Positions 1,472 through 49,292 of a DNA stretch of 64,000 nt are shown here, piece by piece. The stretch spans positions 1 to 64,000 of the forward strand of contig QPMI01000194.1 of assembly GCA_004431415.1 (NCBI GenBank), written 5' to 3'. The translations under genes were made by a program, and so were the position numbers. The DNA comes from Cyanophora paradoxa CCMP329. Its lineage: Eukaryota > Plantae > Glaucophyta. Numbering within the stretch: the first letter of the stretch is position 1; each line of letters opens with the position of its first letter. The notes beneath the pieces are model-generated. The model saw only the letters and a program-made list of their open reading frames with translations, had not been told where the DNA came from and made no database searches.

Positions 1472-2024
1472 GTCAAAACCGGTCGGACCAGTCCAGAAGC
1501 GGCCAGACAGCGCGTTAGAAACGCTAGATGGTCACGGCAAAGACTGAGGGGAGGCTGCAGAAGACCGGCGCACCATGTGAATTTGTTCGAAGGGAGGGAT
1601 ACAACGTTCAGCGCCTGCGTTCGGGCCGTGCAGCTCGGTGAGCGATGCAGTGATCATGAGCGCCGCGCGCGCGCGCTAATGCTGGCACGCACGCCGAGCA
1701 CTAGCGCTTGCACTCTGCAGGATTCGATCGCTGAGCAGGATGTCGTGCTCCGGCCCAGAGTCGGAGTCCCTCTTGTGCGCGGTCGTGCTGCCTTACATCG
1801 CGCCCGCACTAGGGAACTTGACCGCGTGAGTTCTCCGGATCCCTCATGGTTATGCCGTCAATAAAGTATCCACGCAGGACGCTGATTTTTCTTTCCGTAC
1901 GTGCGGATCTCTTTGAGATAGCTCGTTCAGCTCGCCACTCACCACCCCCCCGCCACCCTCGCCGCCGCCGCCGACGCTGTCTACGCTGAACGCAGCCAAC
2001 GAAGGAGATGATCAGAATCAGGAA

Positions 2025-2679
2025 CGCGGGGCACTCGTAATCATGCCGGAGTTCCGCACCAGCCAGATGGTCAGCGGGCTCTGTCGGCGCGCCCCCACCG
2101 GGAGTTCCGCTCACTTTCCCCTGCAGGTCGCCCGCAAGGGGCGGGCGATGCTCCCGTGGGTGGCGCGTCAGGCCCTCGACTGCCGCCACTACGAGTACGC
2201 TGGTCTTGTGTTCGGCTCCCTCTGCCGCGCGGTCTTATGCTTATCTCGCGCAGGTTCCGGACGCTCATGCAGCACGCCGTCCGGCGGCACCCCAAGGACG
2301 AGGACCCGCCGTGCACGCTCCAGTTCGTCTGCGAGGCCTGGACCTCGAAGACGTGCGGGGTGTGCGGCAAGATCAACTACGGGCTCGGCTCGAAGAGGGT
2401 CTTCGAGTGCCGCCCCGGGTGCGGCTTCCGGGCGGACCGCGACGGCGGCGCCGCGCGGTGCGTGTTGTGTCTATACACGTCTATACACAATCGCTGCCCC
2501 CCCCCCCGCCTAGTCCCAACACGGCCTAGCCACGGCGTAATTTTCCGTCTAGGGCCGGCTCGCCCTCCCAGCGCCGCCCGATCGCAATCGTAATCGTACT
2601 GATCGCACAGACCTCTCGCAGGGGCATCCTGATCCGCTACGGCACGGGCGTGGACGCGAAGCGCCTGCTCAGCTCGTAG
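2025..2679 (+). pseudogene. Fanzor2-like (TnpB-derived) RuvC nuclease, C-terminal 124 aa, three spliceosomal introns
   Basis: Exons 2025-2069, 2127-2194, 2254-2457, 2622-2679 splice (all GT-AG) to RGALVIMPEFRTSQMVARKGRAMLPWVARQALDCRHYEFRTLMQHAVRRH..VCEAWTSKTCGVCG..FECRPGCGFRADRDGGAARGILIRY..LLSS*. Motifs: P-x-F-x-TS-x-M, E-A-[WY]-TSKTC, Zn ribbon, DRD..AR.I. No start codon or RuvC-I. Confidence 0.9.
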
Positions 2680-2822
2680 CTACAGCTAGCTAGGCTCGGC
2701 TCCGATTCCCCTTTTCTCCATCAGGGCACCAGTCCCTGCGGGTTACGCTCTCACCCAAACAGCACGGGTACAGTTAAAGCGCTGTGGTAGGAGGTCCGGC
2801 GCGCCCGTAGCGTAAAAAGAGA
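2025..2822 (+). mobile_element. 5'-truncated Fanzor-carrying insertion flanked by a 14-bp direct repeat (ATCAGAATCAGGAA at 2011-2024 and 2823-2836)
   Basis: Exact 14-bp duplication of SWEET exon sequence on both sides; the insert holds a Fanzor C-terminus plus 143 nt of non-coding 3' sequence. Confidence 0.85.
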
Positions 2823-2840
2823 ATCAGAATCAGGAAAGAC
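2680..2840 (+). ncRNA. Putative Fanzor omegaRNA scaffold with flank-derived guide
   Basis: Lies between the Fanzor stop and the element right end. Pairings CAGGG2722/CCCTG2734, GGGT2740/ACCC2753, TTACGCT2743/AGCGTAA2809, ACGGG2764/CCCGT2804, ACAG2770/CTGT2782. Confidence 0.5.
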
Positions 2841-3266
2841 AGGTGTATCCTTTCATCGTGAACAAGTAACTGAAAACGACTTTTTCTATCTGACTTCCCT
2901 GAAAACGGATTAGCTGCTTGTCGTGGGTCATCTACGGATTTCTCTTGAAGGACTACTTCGTGTTTGCGTGTAACTGGCTTGGGTACCTTCTTGGGGTGGC
3001 TTGGACATTCACGGTGTACCGTTATGCATCCGATCGGCAGCGGACAACTTCAGAGATCGTGTGCTGCTCCTTTTTCCTTGCCTTGATCCAAGCATCCAGC
3101 TGTGCTACAGATCCTCATCGGAGGCCATGCAATGCTCTTCATGGGCGCCTGCTTTGGCACGTTTGCAATGACACCTGCTCTGTTTGCACCCACCCTCACG
3201 TCCTTGCAGCATTCATCACTGAAATGGAAACGGGCTCTGCACGCGCCATCTGCGGCTCATTGTGTG

Positions 3267-3391
3267 CTAATCGCAATCAGAGACGTCCAACCTTAGCTTT
3301 CGCCCAACCCCTAATCATAATCGCAATCATCAGAGACGTCCAACCTTAGCTTCCGCCCAACCCCTAATCGTAATCGCAATCAAAGACGTCC
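3267..3391 (+). repeat. ~50-bp minisatellite (about 2.5 units) inside the SWEET gene span
   Basis: Unit ~CCCCTAATCGTAATCGCAATCAAAGACGTCCAACCTTAGCTTCCGCCCAA. Confidence 0.9.
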
Positions 3392-4002
3392 TCACAGGCG
3401 GCTTGCAGGGCAATTGTTGTGCTCGTGTCATTCTATGCATCGCCCCTCTCGACACTCTACACTGTCTGCATGGAGCGCAACTCCATATACTTCTTCTGGC
3501 CGCTGTCGTTGACATCATTTCTAAACGGAAGTTTCTGGTGCCGAGCTTTGCTCGCCCCCACGGAATTGTGCACTTAGTGTACGGGCTGTATCTTCGAGAT
3601 CCCTTCATCTGTAAGGCCACCCGCCTTGTGTCTCTATCGACGACTTATACCCACTAGGGGCGCCGAACTTTACAGGCGCCATCACAGGAATGCTGCAGCT
3701 CATCCTTCGCCTTGTTTTCAAAGCACGCCCAGCGGGCAGCCCCCGTCCTGGTTAATCCCGCTCTTGCGTGTTCTCGCTGCCGACGTTAATTTTTTTGCAG
3801 GAAAGGAGAATGTGGACGCAGTTGTCTAGATCTTTCTCACATATGGTGCAAAAGACACTGCAAAAGAGAATGGAGGCAGCCCTCCTTCTCCCTCTGCAAT
3901 GCTTTCTATGCATGTGCCTCAGGCGGCGCCTTCGTCAAGCAGCAAAACACCACAGGGGTCGACTCCAGGGGCAAGGCCAAAGGCATGCATTTGGATGCTT
4001 GA

Positions 4003-4125
4003 CCTCCGCCCCACCCCTAATCGAAATCGCAATCAAAGACGTCCAACCTTAGCTCCGCCCCACCCCTAGTCGTAATCGAAATCAAAGACGTCCAAGTTCC
4101 AACCCAAGGCCTAATCGTAATCGCA
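4003..4125 (+). repeat. Same ~50-bp minisatellite, second cluster
   Basis: CCCCTAATCGAAATCGCAATCAAAGACGTCCAACCTTAGCTCCGCCCCA repeated about 2.5 times. Confidence 0.9.
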
Positions 4126-4606: not shown

Positions 4607-7600
4607 CTACTGGAACTTATTCTGAATCTGCCTGTGCACATGGCACAGGTACTCAACGTAGGAGAATGTGGCCTGGTGTCGGTCCTCCAACAGGTAGCAG
4701 AAAAACCGAGATTCCAGGGCATCACGCTGCTTGAGGATGCGTACTACTGGGTGCACTGAGCCACCACGGGGTAAGCTGAAGCGAACAGCCCTAACAATGT
4801 TGTTGATTCGTTGGCTGAGCTCGTTGTCGTACTGAACCAGCCGGAGCTAGGCAGGCATCAGTCAATGTGCAAGCTCAAGTGCTCAACGCATGTGCACACC
4901 TGTGAGCAATCCACATCCTCGATTGAAACATGGGATGGAATGCCGAAAACGTCAGTCAGCCAGGCAGGATTGACCTGTTTCCCTATCCAGAGGAACACAA
5001 GCAGGCCATCCTCCACAAGGAAGACACCATCAGCATCGAGTTTTTCGCTAGAGAGCGAAATGGTAGGAGGAAGAATGACATCGCCATGTTGTGCAAGGGC
5101 CCCAACCTACAAAATTTCAGTACGCTGATCGAGGCACTTATTCTCGTAGCAGTCTTACGTTTGAAGGCAGATTGTGGAGAGCAAACATCCGTGGGTAAAT
5201 GTAATGGGTTGAGAATGCTGCACTCATTGACATGATATTATGGATGAGGTAAGCACGATCATCCATGCGAACATCTGTACCAGCTCTGCGAAAACAGAAC
5301 GTAAATCAGCTGAACGCAAAACAATGACGAGATCCAGATAATTCAGTTCATACCGGAAAGCCATATTCTTCAAGATTGACAATGTGTACAGAGGAAGCAG
5401 TTTCAGAGCCTCTGGAAGGATGAGCTGACCCGAGGATGCAGAGTTCGTGCAGTACTTGCGGTATGTGTAGAGGATATCCACGCACTGGTCTGTAGCACGT
5501 TGTCTGACCTTCTCAAGAGGGTGCTGGAGCGCCATCTGAGCAGCTTTGGCGGGCGGGAAGTCAGCAGAGGCATCATAGGTCTCCAATCGGAAAACACAAC
5601 GTACAAAGTCGAAGTTGCAGATTCATAATGCTGTCCAGATCCGCATAGCGGAACAGATTGCCAAGGATCGCAGTGACGGGGACTGAGACTGTGCACACCC
5701 GAATTCGACGCTCTCCAGTTGCTGTGGTGTATCTGGGCTTGAAATGAGTGCACAATCCGAAAGCAAGCACACCAAAAACTGCGCACAACAGGGCCGACTG
5801 TAGGCATGCTTCAGAATTCTCAGGAAGCTTGTCGTCATGCTTCAATACAGCTGCAAAAGCTTTGTCGCTGTCTATGTTTGCAAGATCCATGTCGTCAGGA
5901 GTGCGGCCAAAGAAGTTGCCGAGGTACTCCTTCACGCAGAGTCCTAGATGTGAACAAATCAGAGCGAGTTCTGCAGCAATCACTAAATGCAGATAGCACA
6001 CACCTGCAGAGCACCGCAATCGCATGACTGCTTCGAAGCCACTTGGCCGAGTCACAAGGCGGGAGAGTTCATCCTGGAACTTCTCCGCATCTTTGGCTGC
6101 ATTGAATGCAGGGTAGTAGTAGAGATCGCCTCCAGTTGGACCAGTCAGGGCGCCTGCATTTTCCCAACCTCAGTAAGCTTGCCAGGACTTCAACACATAA
6201 CAAACGTACTCATTGTTGCAGTGTCGATGTAATTGTTCGAGAAGAGGAATATGTGTACACTGACCTGGGAAGACAGTAAACTCACTGATTCGGCTTCTTC
6301 TGCATTCTTCGTACCTGGTTTAGCGCACAATCCCGGGCAAGATCCTTGTACCAAGGGTCTTGTGGTGCAAGTAGCGACCGTTCCTTTTCTGTTCCATACA
6401 GTCGTGTATCATCCCGGGGCTTGAGCTTGCCAGGTCCGACTGTGGAAAGCATGCTCTGGAACACCACAACACGGCCCCCAATGGCTCGCTGAAAAATGCT
6501 CGTTGAGCGAAGCAGAAAAAGAGACAATTGAACTGGATATAAGCACCAGGGCACAGAAGCCGCCATGAATTGCTGCGGAGGCCGATGTCGTACCGACTTG
6601 CGTGCCAGAGAAGAGGGCAGGAATTTTGTCCAGGAGATTGTTCAGAGAATCGCGATTGGGCTCGAGAGGAACGAGCAAATCATCCGGAAGTGGAACGAAC
6701 ATGTCATCAATGTCAGCAACAACAAGCATCTGAGGGCCTGCCTGATGCTGTACACCAGGATTAAGGATAAACAGGAAATCGAAAAAGGAGGCCTGAACCT
6801 TGAGATTGTAGTAGTGAACAGCTTTGTCATACGTCACAATGCAAACACGAGTCCTCTCAGGAGCGGATATCCTGGTCAGGACATCACGCAAACTTGCGAT
6901 GGTTAAAGCAGTGACTCCGCTGGACATAGCCGCATACGAGACGTCGATAGCAAACACCCAGGATGGTGGCTGAAGCGGGCGACCAGGCATAACGTATTCC
7001 TGGGAAGGAATGTGATTGATGTTAAATTGGAATAGGAAATGTGGCGGGAGAGTTCATCCTGGAAATAAAATTTACCGGCGTGGCCACAAATTCTACAGCT
7101 CCGTGGGTAAGCTCCGGGCGCTCATACAAGTCACGGCGTTTCCCAGATGCATCCAGATTGCAGTAGTACTCGCGCGGAACTGCGGTGGAACTCAGTTCGA
7201 GAATTAAGGAGCACACATGTGCTGACCATCATTCGCCATTCCACAGAGATTGCAGACAAACCTCCGGCCTTGTTCCACAAATGTCATCATGGGGTTGATG
7301 TACGCACGACATCTCCTGCATCGCACAGGACCAGTTGGACCACAATCCACCACAGGAACAGGCTCCTACGTTCACAGTGAGCGATCCGTGCATTGCATTC
7401 AAAAGATGGGACGAAATCTATTCGCAAGAAGAAGTGCACCTCCTCAGGAGCTTGCCTTGCAAGAGGTTGCATCACAACAGCTAGGGGTAGCGAGGAAGTG
7501 TTCAAAAGCTCGGAGCTATGAGGTATTTGGTTTATCGTCAATCTCAAGAACCGCGGGCTTGCGTTGCCCTGCCGAAAGCATGAGTGAGGCGACGGGAGTG

Positions 7601-8667: not shown

Positions 8668-9696
8668 TGCACTTAAAGTTCGCGGCCAAGTGCTGACGAC
8701 GATGGCCTCGCACGCTGTACCCGGCTTCGAAATTGATCGTTCGTCGACGCTTTTCTCTCGAGCTCGACGCTTCGCGCGACAACGGTGCATTACGTAGTTT
8801 CGCTTTTTGAATTTTCGGTTTGCAGCTAGGCGAGCTCGGTTCTACGCGCAGGTCTCCGGGCGGCGCACCTGGCGCCGCGCGCGCGCGTCGACGTCCGTCG
8901 ACGGTCGGCACTGATCATGAGCTAGCGCTGCGCTGCCGCAGTGCGGCAGGCCGCGCGCGCCGGCGCCGTGGACCGCCGGGCCGGGCGCGCGCCCACTCGA
9001 CCGTCGGACCGTCGGCCGCAGACCGGACATCCGATGATCATCGGATCCAGTACCGCCTGCCGCCGGGCCGGGAACTCCGTGGTGACCTGGCCTGAACCGA
9101 CTTGCAATTGCAACTGAGGACTGCCAGCTAGCGCTGCACTGCGGCATGCAGCTGCAGCAAGCATTAGGACCCGCGGCCGGGAGTCCGGGACTGCAGTCCC
9201 ACGCCCAACCTCGTAGTTTCGCTTTTTGATTTCTCGTTTTGCAGCTAGACCCGCGCTCAGTTCTATGCACCGCCGCTGCGGCAGGTCTCCGGTCGGTGCA
9301 TGCACACGTGCAGTGATCATGACCTAGTCCTGGCCCCAGCGCGTCGGCACTGAGCTGCAGGCCGGCGCTGCAGGCCGCCAGGCCGGGCACGCGCCTGCGG
9401 CTGAGTCTCCGAGTCTTTGACCGTGGAGCTGGCACCGGGCAGCATCTGGGGCTTAACATTTCTAGAACGCGCATGTTTAATTAATATAACCTCCCTGCGA
9501 CCCAAGGCTGCACTGCCCCTCGGGGGGCACAAGCTCTGTGAGTGGCACCACCGGCCGGGCTGTGTGCACTTACCGCATAAACATTACCATTTCAAATCTC
9601 GCCCAACCTTCAAACCCGCGGGAGGCCAGCAAGGGGAACAATTGCTGAAAACGAAGCTCTGGTAAAACAAAGAATACATAACATCTGCTACCTCAT

Positions 9697-17138: not shown

Positions 17139-17221
17139 GAAGCTAAGGTTGGGCGTCTCTGATTGCGATTACGATTAGGGTTCGGACGACGAAGCTTAAG
17201 GTTGGACGTCTTTGACGCGAT
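17139..17221 (-). repeat. ~50-bp minisatellite, third cluster (inverted)
   Basis: Reverse complement reads CAAAGACGTCCAACCTTAAGCTTCG..CCCTAATCGTAATCGCAATCAGAGACGCCCAACCTTAGCTTCG. Confidence 0.85.
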
Positions 17222-32061: not shown

Positions 32062-33849
32062 TCACGCTTCTGCTTTTGCTACACGACCCCGACCCCGCAC
32101 TGCATTCGCTGCACCTCGTTCACCTCCAGGCGAACTGCGAGCTGCCCCGCCACGGCCAGCCCCACGACCACCCCTCGACGACATTGGCCGGTCCATGCCA
32201 CCACGGCTGCCCCTGAGATGCGGGCCGCCACGTCCACGGCCCCGGAAGTCACCCCCGCGAGCCTCACCACCGCGAGTCTTTGACTGCCGGGTCTCAACCT
32301 TCAATTCCTTTCCATCCAGCGCAGGCTGCTCCAAGTTTAGTTCGATGCAGAGTTTAGGGTTAGGGCAGGAGTTTAGGGTTAGGGAAAGGCAACATGAAAC
32401 GCGAAGAGACAAACCCTGGTCGCGTCCGCAAGAAGCTTGACAACCGCTTCAGGAGTTTCGAAGTCGACAAATCCGTAGTTCTAAATGTGAAAGGGATTGT
32501 GGGATTAAAGAAAAGCTCACAGGAACAAATATATGATGCCCGACCTTGTCCGTCCTGATAGTGACACCAGTAATGGTCCCGTATTTCGCGAAAAGCGCGC
32601 GAAGCTTGGACTCGACCGTGGGCATGTCATAGACATCCGTAGGGAGATTCCCCACGAACACAGAACGCTTCTCATCTGGACACCCTCGCTCAGCGAGGGG
32701 CAGGCAGGTTGAGCGAAATTAAGGACAGCAAACCCTCTGCTGCATCATCAATCCCAGAGCGATCTTCGGTAATTGGTGCGTGCTGTCCGGGCGCAGGCTG
32801 TGGAGTGGAAGTGGATGGCCGCGGCGCGGTTGCTTGCGGACGAGATTCCTTTGGCTTCTCCAGAGCATTTGCAGCCGCGGCCGTCGAAAGAATCGATGCG
32901 TATGTCTTCTTACCCCCTGCAACCGAGGCGGCCGCGCTGTCCTCGGCTACTTGCACTGGCGTCGAACTGCCGGTCGCCGCGCGACTCTCCGAATCGACCG
33001 GCGCGCTTGCTGGCGCCGCGATCGCAGTAGCCGCAGCGTGGCGCGTAGCGGCTGCAGGTGCTGGTTGAGCTGGAGCTTGGGCAGGAGCTTGGGCGGGAGT
33101 TGGGGCTGCTGGCGTGGCTACTGCCAGGGGCTGCTGAGCCGGCGTCTTCGGGGGAGCGCTATGAGAAACGACGGTCTGGACGGGCTCCGGAACGGGGTGG
33201 GCTGGAGGTGCGAAGTGAATAAGAAGCAGGACTGTGTCGAAGAAAAGGGCGCACCAGTCAAATCCGCGGAAGCGGCCGAGGTCGCTTCCGGCTGAAGGAA
33301 ACGGAAGATGTCATTCAACACGTAGAACCCGTTCTGCTGCGGCGCGAGGAAGAAGGTTTGCGCGAAACGCCGTGGCGCCGAGTTCTTGTTTGCAAGGTAG
33401 CCAGTAACCATCACGATGACGCCGCCGCTGAGTGATGTCTGGCTATCTACAAAAGAGATCTGTGGCTTGCAGTCCTTGAAGTCGAGGGACAGAATCTTTT
33501 CATGGATGTTCTGTGGGGCGCCGCAGCACGAGCGGCGCTCAGGTGCGCAAGATTCCGAACATGCGCGAGGTACATGGCCTGGTTCGCACCTTCTGGCCGA
33601 CGGCGGTGTCGGTCGACTTCTCGGCGTCCTCCTCGCTGAATGTGAAAACACTCTCCTCTTTGTAGAAGCGGTGGAGAGAGTTTGGGTTCGACGCAAGCAG
33701 CATGTAGTACTGGCGCACAAACGCATTCCCTGCGATGGGATGGCTGCGTGCTTAGCATGCGTCGCGCAGACTGGGCGATGATTCGGTCTTACAGCTAACG
33801 CGAACGCCGCGGACGCTGGCGCACCGACTACATTCGGGTTCGTCGCCAT
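32062..33849 (-). CDS. G3BP: G3BP/NTF2-RRM-RGG RNA-binding protein
   Basis: NTF2 (VDSQTSLSGGVIVMVTG, FAQTFFLAPQQNGFYVLNDIFRF), RRM (SVFVGNLP), C-terminal RGG repeats. Confidence 0.92.
32353..32384 (+). repeat. Interstitial telomere-like repeats in a G3BP intron
   Basis: TTTAGGGTTAGGG-CAGGAG-TTTAGGGTTAGGG. Confidence 0.75.
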
Positions 33850-34058
33850 CGCTTTTCGCGCCTCAGCCTTGAGTTCTGGTGTACCCCAAAGACCACCGAA
33901 CAGGTCCGAACTTGTGACCGAAGTGACCGACCAAGGCGTGCGTTGTGAAGCCGACAATTTGTTATAGCGCGTAGCACAGCCAGACGGCACCCAGCGGACG
34001 TGTACAGCCAAGCCCGGAACCGGAGAGTTGGAGCAAGTTAGGACGGCCAGATGCACGG

Positions 34059-46628: not shown

Positions 46629-48441
46629 GTGTAGCATTTCAAGAGCTTGATGGCTTTATCGAAAAGCTATTCGGTGCTACTATTCAACAATGATATAGTG
46701 TTGTGCCTTTTTTTGATTTTAAGTGTCCAGCCTCGCCCGAACTGAAATCAAAGTCATAATCAAACCTTGCCCCACCGGTACCCCCTGCCTTGCGCCTGAA
46801 ATCAGAATTCATTCATTGAGTCAAAATCCAGCATAAATACTCGTAGCAGCCCCGTGGCAGCAGCCGTGACGGATCCGGATGTGCCATAGTGAATGAATTC
46901 GCACACACCGAGACATGTACAAATGGCTTTGGATAGAACTGTCGTGTCCATCTGTGTCGAGTCGACGTCGATCGCGAGAGATGAGCCGACAGGAACAAGC
47001 CTTTTGGACATCGGACCGGGTGGAGCTCGGAAATGGAAATAGCTTTAGCTACCCCGGGCCCGAGGATCCGGACTATGTTTAGCGCTGCAGTACAGGGGAG
47101 ATCCTACTGGAGCTCGAGGGAAGGGAGTGACTACCCGAGGGCGAAAGGGGAAGCAGAAGCCAAAAGATAAGTGGGCGGCTAAAAGAACTGCAGCTGGCCA
47201 TGGAGCGCTAGCTATATATACGTACGCGTATACGTATATACCTAGCAAGCTATAGCGAAGGCCTCTGGGAAGGCCTAGGCACCCTGTAGCCTAGTAGTCT
47301 AAACCACTATGGACATGCTGAGGTACGGCCTGTCGCATGTACCGGATATCGATGTGCCGCATGCGCAGCGTACCGGTACCAGCTAGCGCCAGCTATAGCG
47401 CTAGCGCTGGCAATATTAAAACATGCCATGCATGGCACCAGCTGCAGCCGCCCCAGTGTGATCTGTAGTGTATTCTATATATAGCTATATATTATATACC
47501 TAGTCCTGAATTTGCAGCCAACCGTTGAACGGCTCAATTTGTATATACCCCTTCATATGCCGCCCGGCGGCCTCGTCAAATCCGTTTCCCTGCGGCCACG
47601 ACCGGGATTGCCCGCCGGAACGAGTTGGAGACAACCGGGAACGGCCTCCTCTACGCGCTCGAGCTAGCGGCGAGCCCGTAGCTAGCCCGGTTCAACGGTT
47701 GCCGAGAACGGGGACATACATCGTGCATATGCAAGTCCGACGGTCCATGCACGTCGCCGGAGCGCGCCGCCGGACACCCGAAAATGAGCGCGGATGCGGT
47801 TTTCAACTCCCGGTCTTCAATTCGGGCCGCGTTCGAACCGCGGATCTAAAAAAACCCGCGGGGGGTATACGCAACGGGAGCCCACAGCTGCTCGTAAAGC
47901 GCAGTCTGCAGGTGCAGCGCACATCAGACGCAGTCGCGAGGCAGCAGCACAGTTCTGTTGCCTTTCGGGACCGGGCGCCGGTCGGGAGAGAGCGCCTTCA
48001 GGTGAATTCCTCGAGCTCTGCGCCCGCGGCTGACATCGCGCCCGCACCGCGGCTCGCAACATCGCTCACCGTTCATCCCTCCCGATCCGCTTATTCACGC
48101 GCCGCGGGCTTGCGCCGCGTTCACGGACCGCGCAGAGCTTGAACACTCCCATCGCGCGCCTCTGGCTCGCTGGCCGGCCTGGATAGACGATTGGCTCCTT
48201 GAAGCCTCAGAGGATGTACGCTATTGCTTTGATGGCTCTGCGCTGGCCGCCCTGACCGCGCTGGCCGCAGTGGGACGTCCGATTCAGGCGAACTGAAAAA
48301 GCTCGCCCTGCCTGGGGCTATCAATGCCCCCCGGACGGCAAGTGCTCACTTGAAGACTGTCTTCTTCACATCGTGCATGGTGCGCTCGCCCCGCCCGGCA
48401 GGTTCACTTGAAGTCTCACGGGTTCCTTCACAGACGGCGGA

Positions 48442-49135
48442 CCTCGCTCTTTGGGCCAGGTGAGCCGGCGGCGCGGCCGGACGGCTCTCGCAACGGTCTC
48501 TGAGATATTCACCCGCAGATGCCCTCCGTAGCGCGCGCTCGCAGCCCGCGGGGCGCCCAAGCGCATCGAGAGCTCGGGGCTCGTCCGGCGGGCCTCGCTC
48601 TTTGGGCCCGGTGAGCCGGCGGCGTGGCCGGGCGGCTCTCGCAACGGTCTCTGAGATATCCGCACGCAGATGCCCTCCGTAGCGCGCGCTCGCAGCCCGC
48701 GGGGCGCCCAAGCGCATCGAGAGCTCGGGGCTCGTCCGGCGGGCCTCGCTCTTTGGGCCAGGTGAGCCGGCGGCGCGGCCGGACGGCTCTCGCAACGGTC
48801 TCTGAGATATCCGCATGCAGATGCCCTCCGTAGCGCGCGCCCGCAGCCCGCGGGGCGCCCAAGTGCATCGAGAGCTAGGGGCTCGTCCGGCGGGCCTCGC
48901 TCTTTGGGCCAGGTGAGCCGGCGGCGCGGCCGGGCGGCTCTCGCAACGGTCTCTGAGATATCCGCTCGCAAATGCCCTCCGTAGCGCGCGCCCGCAGACC
49001 GCGGGGCGCCGAAGCGGATCGAGAGCTAGGGGCTCGTCCGGCGGGCCTCGCTCTTTGGGCCATGCATGGCCAGGTGAGCCGGCGGCGCGGCCGGGCGGCT
49101 CTCGCAACTATCTCTGATCTATCAGCGCGCAGATG
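48442..49135. repeat. 151-bp tandem satellite, about 4.5 units, followed by a ~25-bp sub-repeat to about 49220
   Basis: CCTCGCTCTTTGGGCC starts at 48442, 48593, 48744, 48895 and 49046. Confidence 0.97.
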
Positions 49136-49292
49136 CCCGCGGGGTGCAGTCCGCGAGAGCTCGGGGCTTGTGCAGTTCGCGAGAGCTCGGGGCTTGTGCA
49201 GTCCGCGAGAACTAGTGCAGGATCTGATTCCATTCCCATCGACAGCGTGAATTTGGATTCCCCCCCCCCCCCCCTTCGTAATTTCTTGCTTA

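Follow-up and report, generated by a model that had tools for sequence, protein, structure and literature searches.

The window analysed here is the whole stretch of 64,000 nucleotides at positions 1 to 64,000 (forward strand) of contig QPMI01000194.1 (assembly GCA_004431415.1) from the glaucophyte Cyanophora paradoxa CCMP329. Close to its left end it contains a copy of an element carrying a gene for the RNA-guided nuclease Fanzor, cut short at its 5′ side and flanked on both sides by the same 14-bp sequence. The original prediction, made from the sequence alone, had described a 5′-truncated Fanzor with an intact 3′ end and three retained introns, and this description was confirmed by tblastn, by read contigs and by a public gene model. 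For the searches the exons were used one at a time, and database gene models were taken for the joined protein. The insert and its borders are composed as follows.

2011 to 2024, + strand: left 14-bp target-site duplication, ATCAGAATCAGGAA (exact-repeat search)
2025 to 2822, + strand: 5′-truncated Fanzor element copy, 798 bp (Pfam, tblastn, contigs, gene model P0001)
2025 to 2069, + strand: exon piece 1, ..(L)AGH..VI.PEFRTSQM, which carries the truncation point (tblastn, direct reading)
2070 to 2126, + strand: intron 1, GT..AG (spliced in an RNA contig of a paralogous copy, joint 2068/2126)
2127 to 2194, + strand: exon piece 2, VARKGRAMLPWVARQALDCRHYE (gene model, tblastn)
2195 to 2253, + strand: intron 2, GT..AG (spliced in RNA, joint 2194/2254)
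2254 to 2457, + strand: exon 3, with the TS-x-x-C4 zinc ribbon and the DRD (RuvC-III) motif (PF07282; PDB 9b0l)
2458 to 2621, + strand: intron 3, GT..AG, within the RuvC-III motif (kept in DNA contigs at about 17x, spliced in RNA)
2622 to 2679, + strand: last exon, ..GILIRYGTGVDAKRLLSS, with the stop codon TAG at 2677-2679 (gene model, tblastn)
2680 to 2821, + strand: non-coding 3′ tail in the position of an omega-RNA scaffold, the most multicopy part (contig depth)
2822, + strand: single extra A between the family end and the right duplication
2823 to 2836, + strand: right 14-bp target-site duplication, ATCAGAATCAGGAA (exact-repeat search)

The four exons together correspond to the public gene model P0001 (tig00000829_g4644.t1, Cyanophora paradoxa). 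They hold the final ~120 Fanzor codons, with the start placed by tblastn at about residue 962-967 of the full-length protein P0159 (tig00000342_g24202; 1087 aa), and exon piece 1 shows a small deletion relative to this protein (about aa 962-978). With such a start, neither the RuvC-I aspartate nor a complete RuvC domain is present. Because everything upstream of about residue 962-967, RuvC-I included, is absent, we regard the copy as a remnant. The tail measures 143 nt when the extra A at 2822 is counted, and the insert terminates in ..CGTAAAAAGAGA, with a run of five A at 2814-2818. No Rfam family matched at E ≤ 1 within positions 1500-3500, the 3′ tail included, and neither a repeat search nor tblastn found a second Fanzor copy in the window.

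Exon 3 matched the Pfam family PF07282 (Cas12f1-like TNB zinc ribbon) with an E-value of 1.5e-9, above the curated cut-off. The zinc ribbon reads WTSKTCGVCG..C..C and contains the [TS]-[TS]-x-x-C4 arrangement, and the RuvC-III motif is likewise present, with FRADRDGGAAR aligning to ADRDENAAK of the mimivirus Fanzor2 protein L79 (PDB 9b0l). L79 was also the nearest solved structure (E 4e-6 with gene model P0002 and 1e-5 with P0159), the match covering the C-terminal ~130 aa only; among solved structures, those of Fanzor1 gave no match at E ≤ 1. Judged from the sequence of these C-terminal ~130 aa, the Cyanophora family looks Fanzor2-like rather than Fanzor1-like. In P0159 Pfam found the TNB domain only and no recombinase domain, and an Atlas look-up of its N-terminus returned weak leads only (DUF8286 at 0.88). 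an HMMER search of 1.8 billion representatives yielded no further close long protein for the family, and nothing on Fanzor in Cyanophora was found in the literature searched.

The exact 14-mer ATCAGAATCAGGAA occurs twice in the window, both times on the + strand, directly to the left and to the right of the 798-bp insert. In block shuffles a mean of 0.7 exact direct 14-mer pairs per window was obtained at a spacing of 200-2000 bp. More telling than this rate is the fact that the repeats abut boundaries set independently of them, and for this reason the duplication is judged real. On the left, tblastn puts the start of the homology to P0159 at 2034, and direct reading of the DNA puts it at 2025-2026 (CGCGGGGCAC = ..AGH..); on the right, the contigs of other copies depart from the reference at 2821. 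The exact bracketing repeat proposed in the original prediction is thus a 14-bp target duplication around a truncated Fanzor copy. The longer, imperfect duplication suggested along with it does exist, with 17 matches in 19 positions (2006-2024 vs. 2818-2836), yet its extra ‘AGAG’ is part of the conserved end of the element. Directly before the left duplication stands GGAGATG, the last four letters being GATG.

For the junctions and for the family as a whole we used Logan contigs over positions 1500-3400 from three DNA runs, dated 2012, 2019 and 2024 and possibly all from the same strain as the assembly, and from one run that behaves as RNA (X15). Contigs of all three DNA runs cross the left junction (1500-2134 or 1500-2069) and the right junction (2792-3386 or 2792-3390) with 0 mismatches. 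The insertion is therefore not an assembly artefact, which settles a doubt about misassembly raised at the outset. The unitig 2792-3386 was found at single-copy depth, indicating that this junction between element end and flank exists at no second locus. Neither an empty-site joint nor a full-length allele was seen in the four runs; as contigs drop rare variants, their lack is no evidence of fixation.

Results for the other copies showed a clear asymmetry between the two ends of the element. At 2821, contigs leave the reference and enter unlike flanks (seven in run X2, three in run X1 and five in X15), and beyond this position the agreement of the flanks with a consensus is only about 0.5. The 3′ end of the family is fixed at 2821, i.e., ..GTAAAAAGAG, and two readings follow from it: the five A belong to the family end and do not form a tail of variable length, and the A at 2822 stands additionally between this end and the duplication. 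The 5′ ends, in turn, are scattered, with no 5′ position backed by three or more contigs. Measured against the single-copy flanks, the summed k-mer depth, which is not equal to copy number, climbed in all three DNA runs from ~4x at 2012-2267 to ~20x at 2268-2395, ~45x at 2396-2587, ~100-150x at 2588-2715 and 200-500x at 2716-2779, and was back at 1x at 2844. The 3′ flanks of the other copies look A-rich in the contigs, as does that of the present copy.

The gene models in EukProt give the same picture. At least 17 of them, located on many contigs, share this Fanzor C-terminus and are truncated at differing points, P0159 being the single one that looks full-length. With P0001 included, five models reach exon 1, seven reach exon 2, 13 the start of exon 3 and 17 the zinc ribbon. 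Two public models are in-frame fusions, P0162 behind Fy-3 (FERRY subunit 3) and P0163 behind AATF/TRAUB, which places some truncated copies on the sense strand, 3′ of host genes. The uniform 3′ end bears directly on a generic repair origin, in which a fragment of element DNA, extrachromosomal or supplied by template switching, would have been captured at a staggered break unrelated to Fanzor and the overhangs filled in. We consider such an origin very unlikely, given that random capture leaves the family-wide fixed 3′ end at 2821 and the scattered 5′ ends unexplained.

To follow the introns, we compared joints in the two kinds of runs. Intron-skipping joints with GT..AG borders, at 2068/2126 and 2194/2254, were detected in the RNA-like run X15 only, and none was present in the three DNA runs. 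For intron 3, a contig of X15 covering exon 3 stops at 2457 with a depth of 308, vs. 16.8 for the contig that enters the intron, and another contig begins at 2624 with CGCGCGGA ahead of it, as expected from splicing of exon 3 to exon 4 in RNA. DNA contigs of paralogous copies, on the other hand, cross the exon-intron borders. In addition, intron 2 contains the start of at least four gene models (MLILRR-FRQ and close variants), indicating that at least four other DNA copies keep this intron. RNA contigs continue beyond 2821 into the flanks, and no transcript end is thus visible there. Taken together, introns that are kept in DNA and spliced in RNA, a fixed terminus and RNA read-through of 2821 favour a DNA template.

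These observations also weigh on target-primed reverse transcription, the second model of the original prediction. In the form considered here, a reverse transcriptase (RT) of the long interspersed nuclear element (LINE) or Penelope type, acting in trans, would recognise the 3′ end of a Fanzor transcript still unspliced in the nucleus and copy it from there into a staggered nick. Part of this model agrees well with the data: 5′ truncation, a strong 3′ overabundance and a 14-bp duplication form its classic signature, the LINE-type combination of truncation and duplication is present in this copy, and the A-rich 3′ flanks here and at other copies suit it too. The rest does not. All three introns are spliced in RNA, where the spliced form is dominant by depth, yet the DNA copies keep them. 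The terminus is fixed at ..AAAAAGAG without a variable tail, and no length variation at 2814-2818, as expected of a poly(A) tail, is listed in the contigs of other copies. Moreover, the RNA does not end at the point from which copying would have to begin. No RT was found among the largest open reading frames (ORFs) of the window that were tested, and no ribozyme among the Rfam searches of 1500-3500, so that the Penelope-like features, an RT with a GIY-YIG gene and a hammerhead ribozyme, were not detected in either. The signature that had suggested this model therefore fits, whereas the fixed run of A, the splicing and the absence of a linked RT from the window do not, and we regard the model as unlikely.

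As the original prediction had argued, and as we agree, IS607 elements, DDE transposons and retrocopying of mRNA all fail to explain the copy. In the case of IS607-type carriers, a 14-bp duplication is present here and P0159 lacks a recombinase domain. The explanation that we favour, tentatively and as somewhat short of evenly likely, is that the insert is a dead, 5′-truncated copy of a multicopy, intron-bearing Fanzor family, made by 3′-anchored, DNA-templated and early-stopping copying into a staggered break. Copying would start at the fixed 3′ end of the element and use DNA, not spliced RNA, as the template. It would then halt early, which would create the 5′ truncation at insertion, and the product would be sealed into the staggered break, giving rise to the 14-bp duplication. 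We infer that the template was DNA, that copying ran along the gene from its 3′ towards its 5′ side, and that the truncation arose at insertion and not later. By analogy, the behaviour may be that called ‘one-ended’ rolling-circle-type transposition for the Chlamydomonas elements CRe-1/2/3.

Several observations speak against this explanation. On neither strand did the terminal 50-140 nt contain a significant hairpin, a hallmark of Helitron2; when 2770-2822 (both strands), 2740-2822 and 2680-2822 were folded as DNA, the results were no better than for shuffles (z -0.7 to +0.95). The tetranucleotide preceding the duplication is GATG and not T-rich (TTTT), and no Helitron or RepHel gene was detected among the large ORFs of the window that were tested. 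By its C-terminal part the protein appears closest to Fanzor2 (mimivirus L79), whereas the Chlamydomonas elements carry Fanzor1, and the A-rich 3′ flanks of other copies would equally fit a LINE-type nick. Furthermore, the duplication was seen in one copy only, from which the 5′ end of the family and any terminal repeats are missing, and the 3′-ward climb in contig depth, since depth is not copy number, can be read as a trend only.

The position of the duplication relative to the element end brings in the first model of the original prediction, abortive restorative homing at this site. It supposes that a full-length element once stood here and was excised from one chromatid, after which Fanzor cut the empty site ~14 nt into the flank that matches its guide. 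The right end would have copied the sister element from the right end of the latter, released after ~800 nt and been end-joined to the left, and the left end would have retained protospacer positions 1-14, leaving the duplication. Such geometry gives exactly the observed product. The duplication begins 1-2 nt past the element end, where the guide begins, and its 14-bp length agrees with the 14-15 nt of Fanzor guides (2026 review, PMC13565253). The single-copy depth of the junction unitig 2792-3386 is consistent with an event in situ. The family looks Fanzor2-like, and IS607-type carriers of Fanzor2 excise and themselves make no duplication. The model also predicts the pattern known from Chlamydomonas, with duplications at most truncated copies and none at copies that reach the consensus 5′ end.

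Despite this fit, we consider homing at this site quite unlikely. Neither an empty nor a full-length allele appeared in the four runs, and GATG before the duplication differs from the 3-nt G-rich target-adjacent motif (TAM) reported for Fanzor2 (PMC13565253). No recombinase is known for the family, TNB being all that Pfam sees in P0159. To account for the several hundred-fold excess of very short tails, nearly all past insertions would have to have been truncated in place, and no experiment is known to have yielded a repair product of this kind. The general proposition, that Fanzor elements leave 3′-anchored truncated copies with a duplicated guide-matching flank because, after an RNA-guided cut at the empty site, repair copies the sister incompletely and then joins the ends, is to our minds just as doubtful. 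If it were true, the duplication would record the position of the nuclease cut, and a single mechanism would account for this copy, for the duplications that follow directly on the insertion motif at truncated CRe-1/2/3 copies and perhaps for the fuzzy 5′ ends of the MCi-2 elements of Mucor. Fanzor homing would then also have its first trace in a eukaryotic genome.

The gene that received the insert encodes a SWEET-like sugar transporter, of which two exons were recognized, one on either side of the Fanzor copy.

1740 to 1826, + strand: exon 1 of the host SWEET-like gene (MSCSGPESESLLCAVVLPYIAPALGNLTA), followed by GT at 1827 (RNA contig 1621-1825)
2918 to 3040, + strand: next exon of the host SWEET gene (MtN3_slv), bounds approximate (PF03083, E 1.6e-5)

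This places the insert in intron 1 and in the same orientation as the host gene, for which the copy amounts to a dead remnant in an intron. In X15 the contigs of exon 1 (1621-1825) were present at a depth of ~11, and positions 2844-3227, including the next exon, were uncovered. The insertion may end or disturb the host SWEET transcript; a filter or low expression would be an alternative cause of the gap.

The introns of the SWEET gene also contain tandem pairs of a dispersed ~53-bp repeat (..CCAACCTTAGCT.CCGCCC.ACCCCTAATCGTAATCGCAATCA.AGACGT..), which is found elsewhere as well. Its sites in the window include 3256-3400, 4005-4125 and 17140-17215 (- strand), and its core AATCGYAATCG occurs 16 times vs. 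2 expected. Intron 3 of the Fanzor copy holds a 24-nt match to this repeat (2573-2596), two other Fanzor copies abut it (joints 2821/3275 and 2821/3346), and the gene model P0004 runs through an inverted copy. An origin of the target site as a relic of the nearby 53-bp ‘AATCGTAATCGCAATC’ repeat was rejected, as the alignment score was below the shuffle mean; the two have AATCAGA in common, 7 nt only.

Further repeats and one gene were noted elsewhere in the window. An exact 22-bp direct repeat, GGCGGGAGAGTTCATCCTGGAA, is present at 6058-6079 and 7043-7064, with ~960 bp between the copies, and could be another long target duplication or a repeat internal to a gene. An imperfect ~45-bp direct repeat (CGTAGTTTCGCTTTTTGA..TTGCAGCTAG; 8793-8838 and 9212-9257) encloses a very GC-rich segment of ~400 bp, and a very GC-rich tandem array of a 151-bp unit (4.6 copies, 92% identity) occupies 48435-49138. 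On the - strand, an ORF at 33118-34056 encodes an NTF2 domain (E 3e-23), and no RepHel was found beside it among the window ORFs tested.

Comparison with known systems showed that the insertion signature itself is not new. CRe-1, CRe-2 and CRe-3 of Chlamydomonas reinhardtii are non-autonomous Helitron2 elements that carry Fanzor1 genes of 5-10 exons (Bao and Jurka, 2013; PMC3627910). Their 3′ parts are overabundant, 5′ truncation is frequent, and duplications of ~7-19 bp, which begin directly behind the insertion motif TTTT, occur mostly at truncated copies, whereas copies that end at the consensus 5′ end have no duplication; Bao and Jurka read this signature as one-ended rolling-circle transposition (PMC3627910). 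The Cyanophora copy resembles these elements in that its Fanzor gene contains introns and occupies the 3′ side of the element, and in having a duplication, here of 14 bp. It differs from them in the host, a glaucophyte and not a green alga, in a protein apparently nearest to Fanzor2/TnpB and not Fanzor1, and in having neither a 3′ hairpin nor a T-rich tetranucleotide before the duplication.

The Fanzor1 elements MCi-2 of Mucor circinelloides have constant 3′ regions, fuzzy 5′ ends and 11-12-bp duplications, and lack inverted repeats (PMC3627910). The Cyanophora family likewise combines a constant 3′ region, which holds the Fanzor gene, with variable 5′ ends and a long duplication. In contrast, the duplications of MCi-2 follow a common pattern, ATAATTNNNN(N), and its copies are several kb long with different 5′ modules instead of being simple truncations, one subfamily having a partial Crypton recombinase. 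As Craig (2023) has tentatively connected the non-canonical duplications of Chlamydomonas with cutting by Fanzor, the ‘little-described mode’ of mobility announced by the original prediction was overstated: the signature had been published for CRe-1/2/3 and in part for MCi-2, and a link between cutting and duplication had already been put forward.

Two further systems are similar in part. Retrocopies mediated by LINEs are also 5′-truncated with the 3′ end intact, have duplications of 7-20 bp and include many very short copies, yet the Cyanophora copies keep introns that are spliced in RNA and have no variable poly(A) or repeat tail, nor is an RT linked to them in the window. Homing of TnpB in IS605-IS607 elements (PMC13565253) likewise involves an RNA-guided nuclease gene and a non-coding 3′ tail that abuts the flank where the guide begins. 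It restores the whole element without a duplication, however, and a truncated product with a duplication was not found in the literature searched.

What is new here is the lineage, the apparently different type of Fanzor and the lack of Helitron hallmarks, together with the family-level combination of a fixed 3′ end, scattered 5′ ends with a climb in depth, and introns kept in DNA. With a glaucophyte added to the green alga and the Mucor fungus, the pattern, a long duplication included, has now been observed in a third distant lineage. The comparison raises the question of whether duplication lengths and the preceding motif match the TAM and cut sites of the nuclease, or the target rules of rolling-circle transposition or of RTs. 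As the lineage and apparently also the type of Fanzor differ from those described before, our results suggest that the pattern is tied to the Fanzor/omega-RNA end and not to a single carrier transposon.

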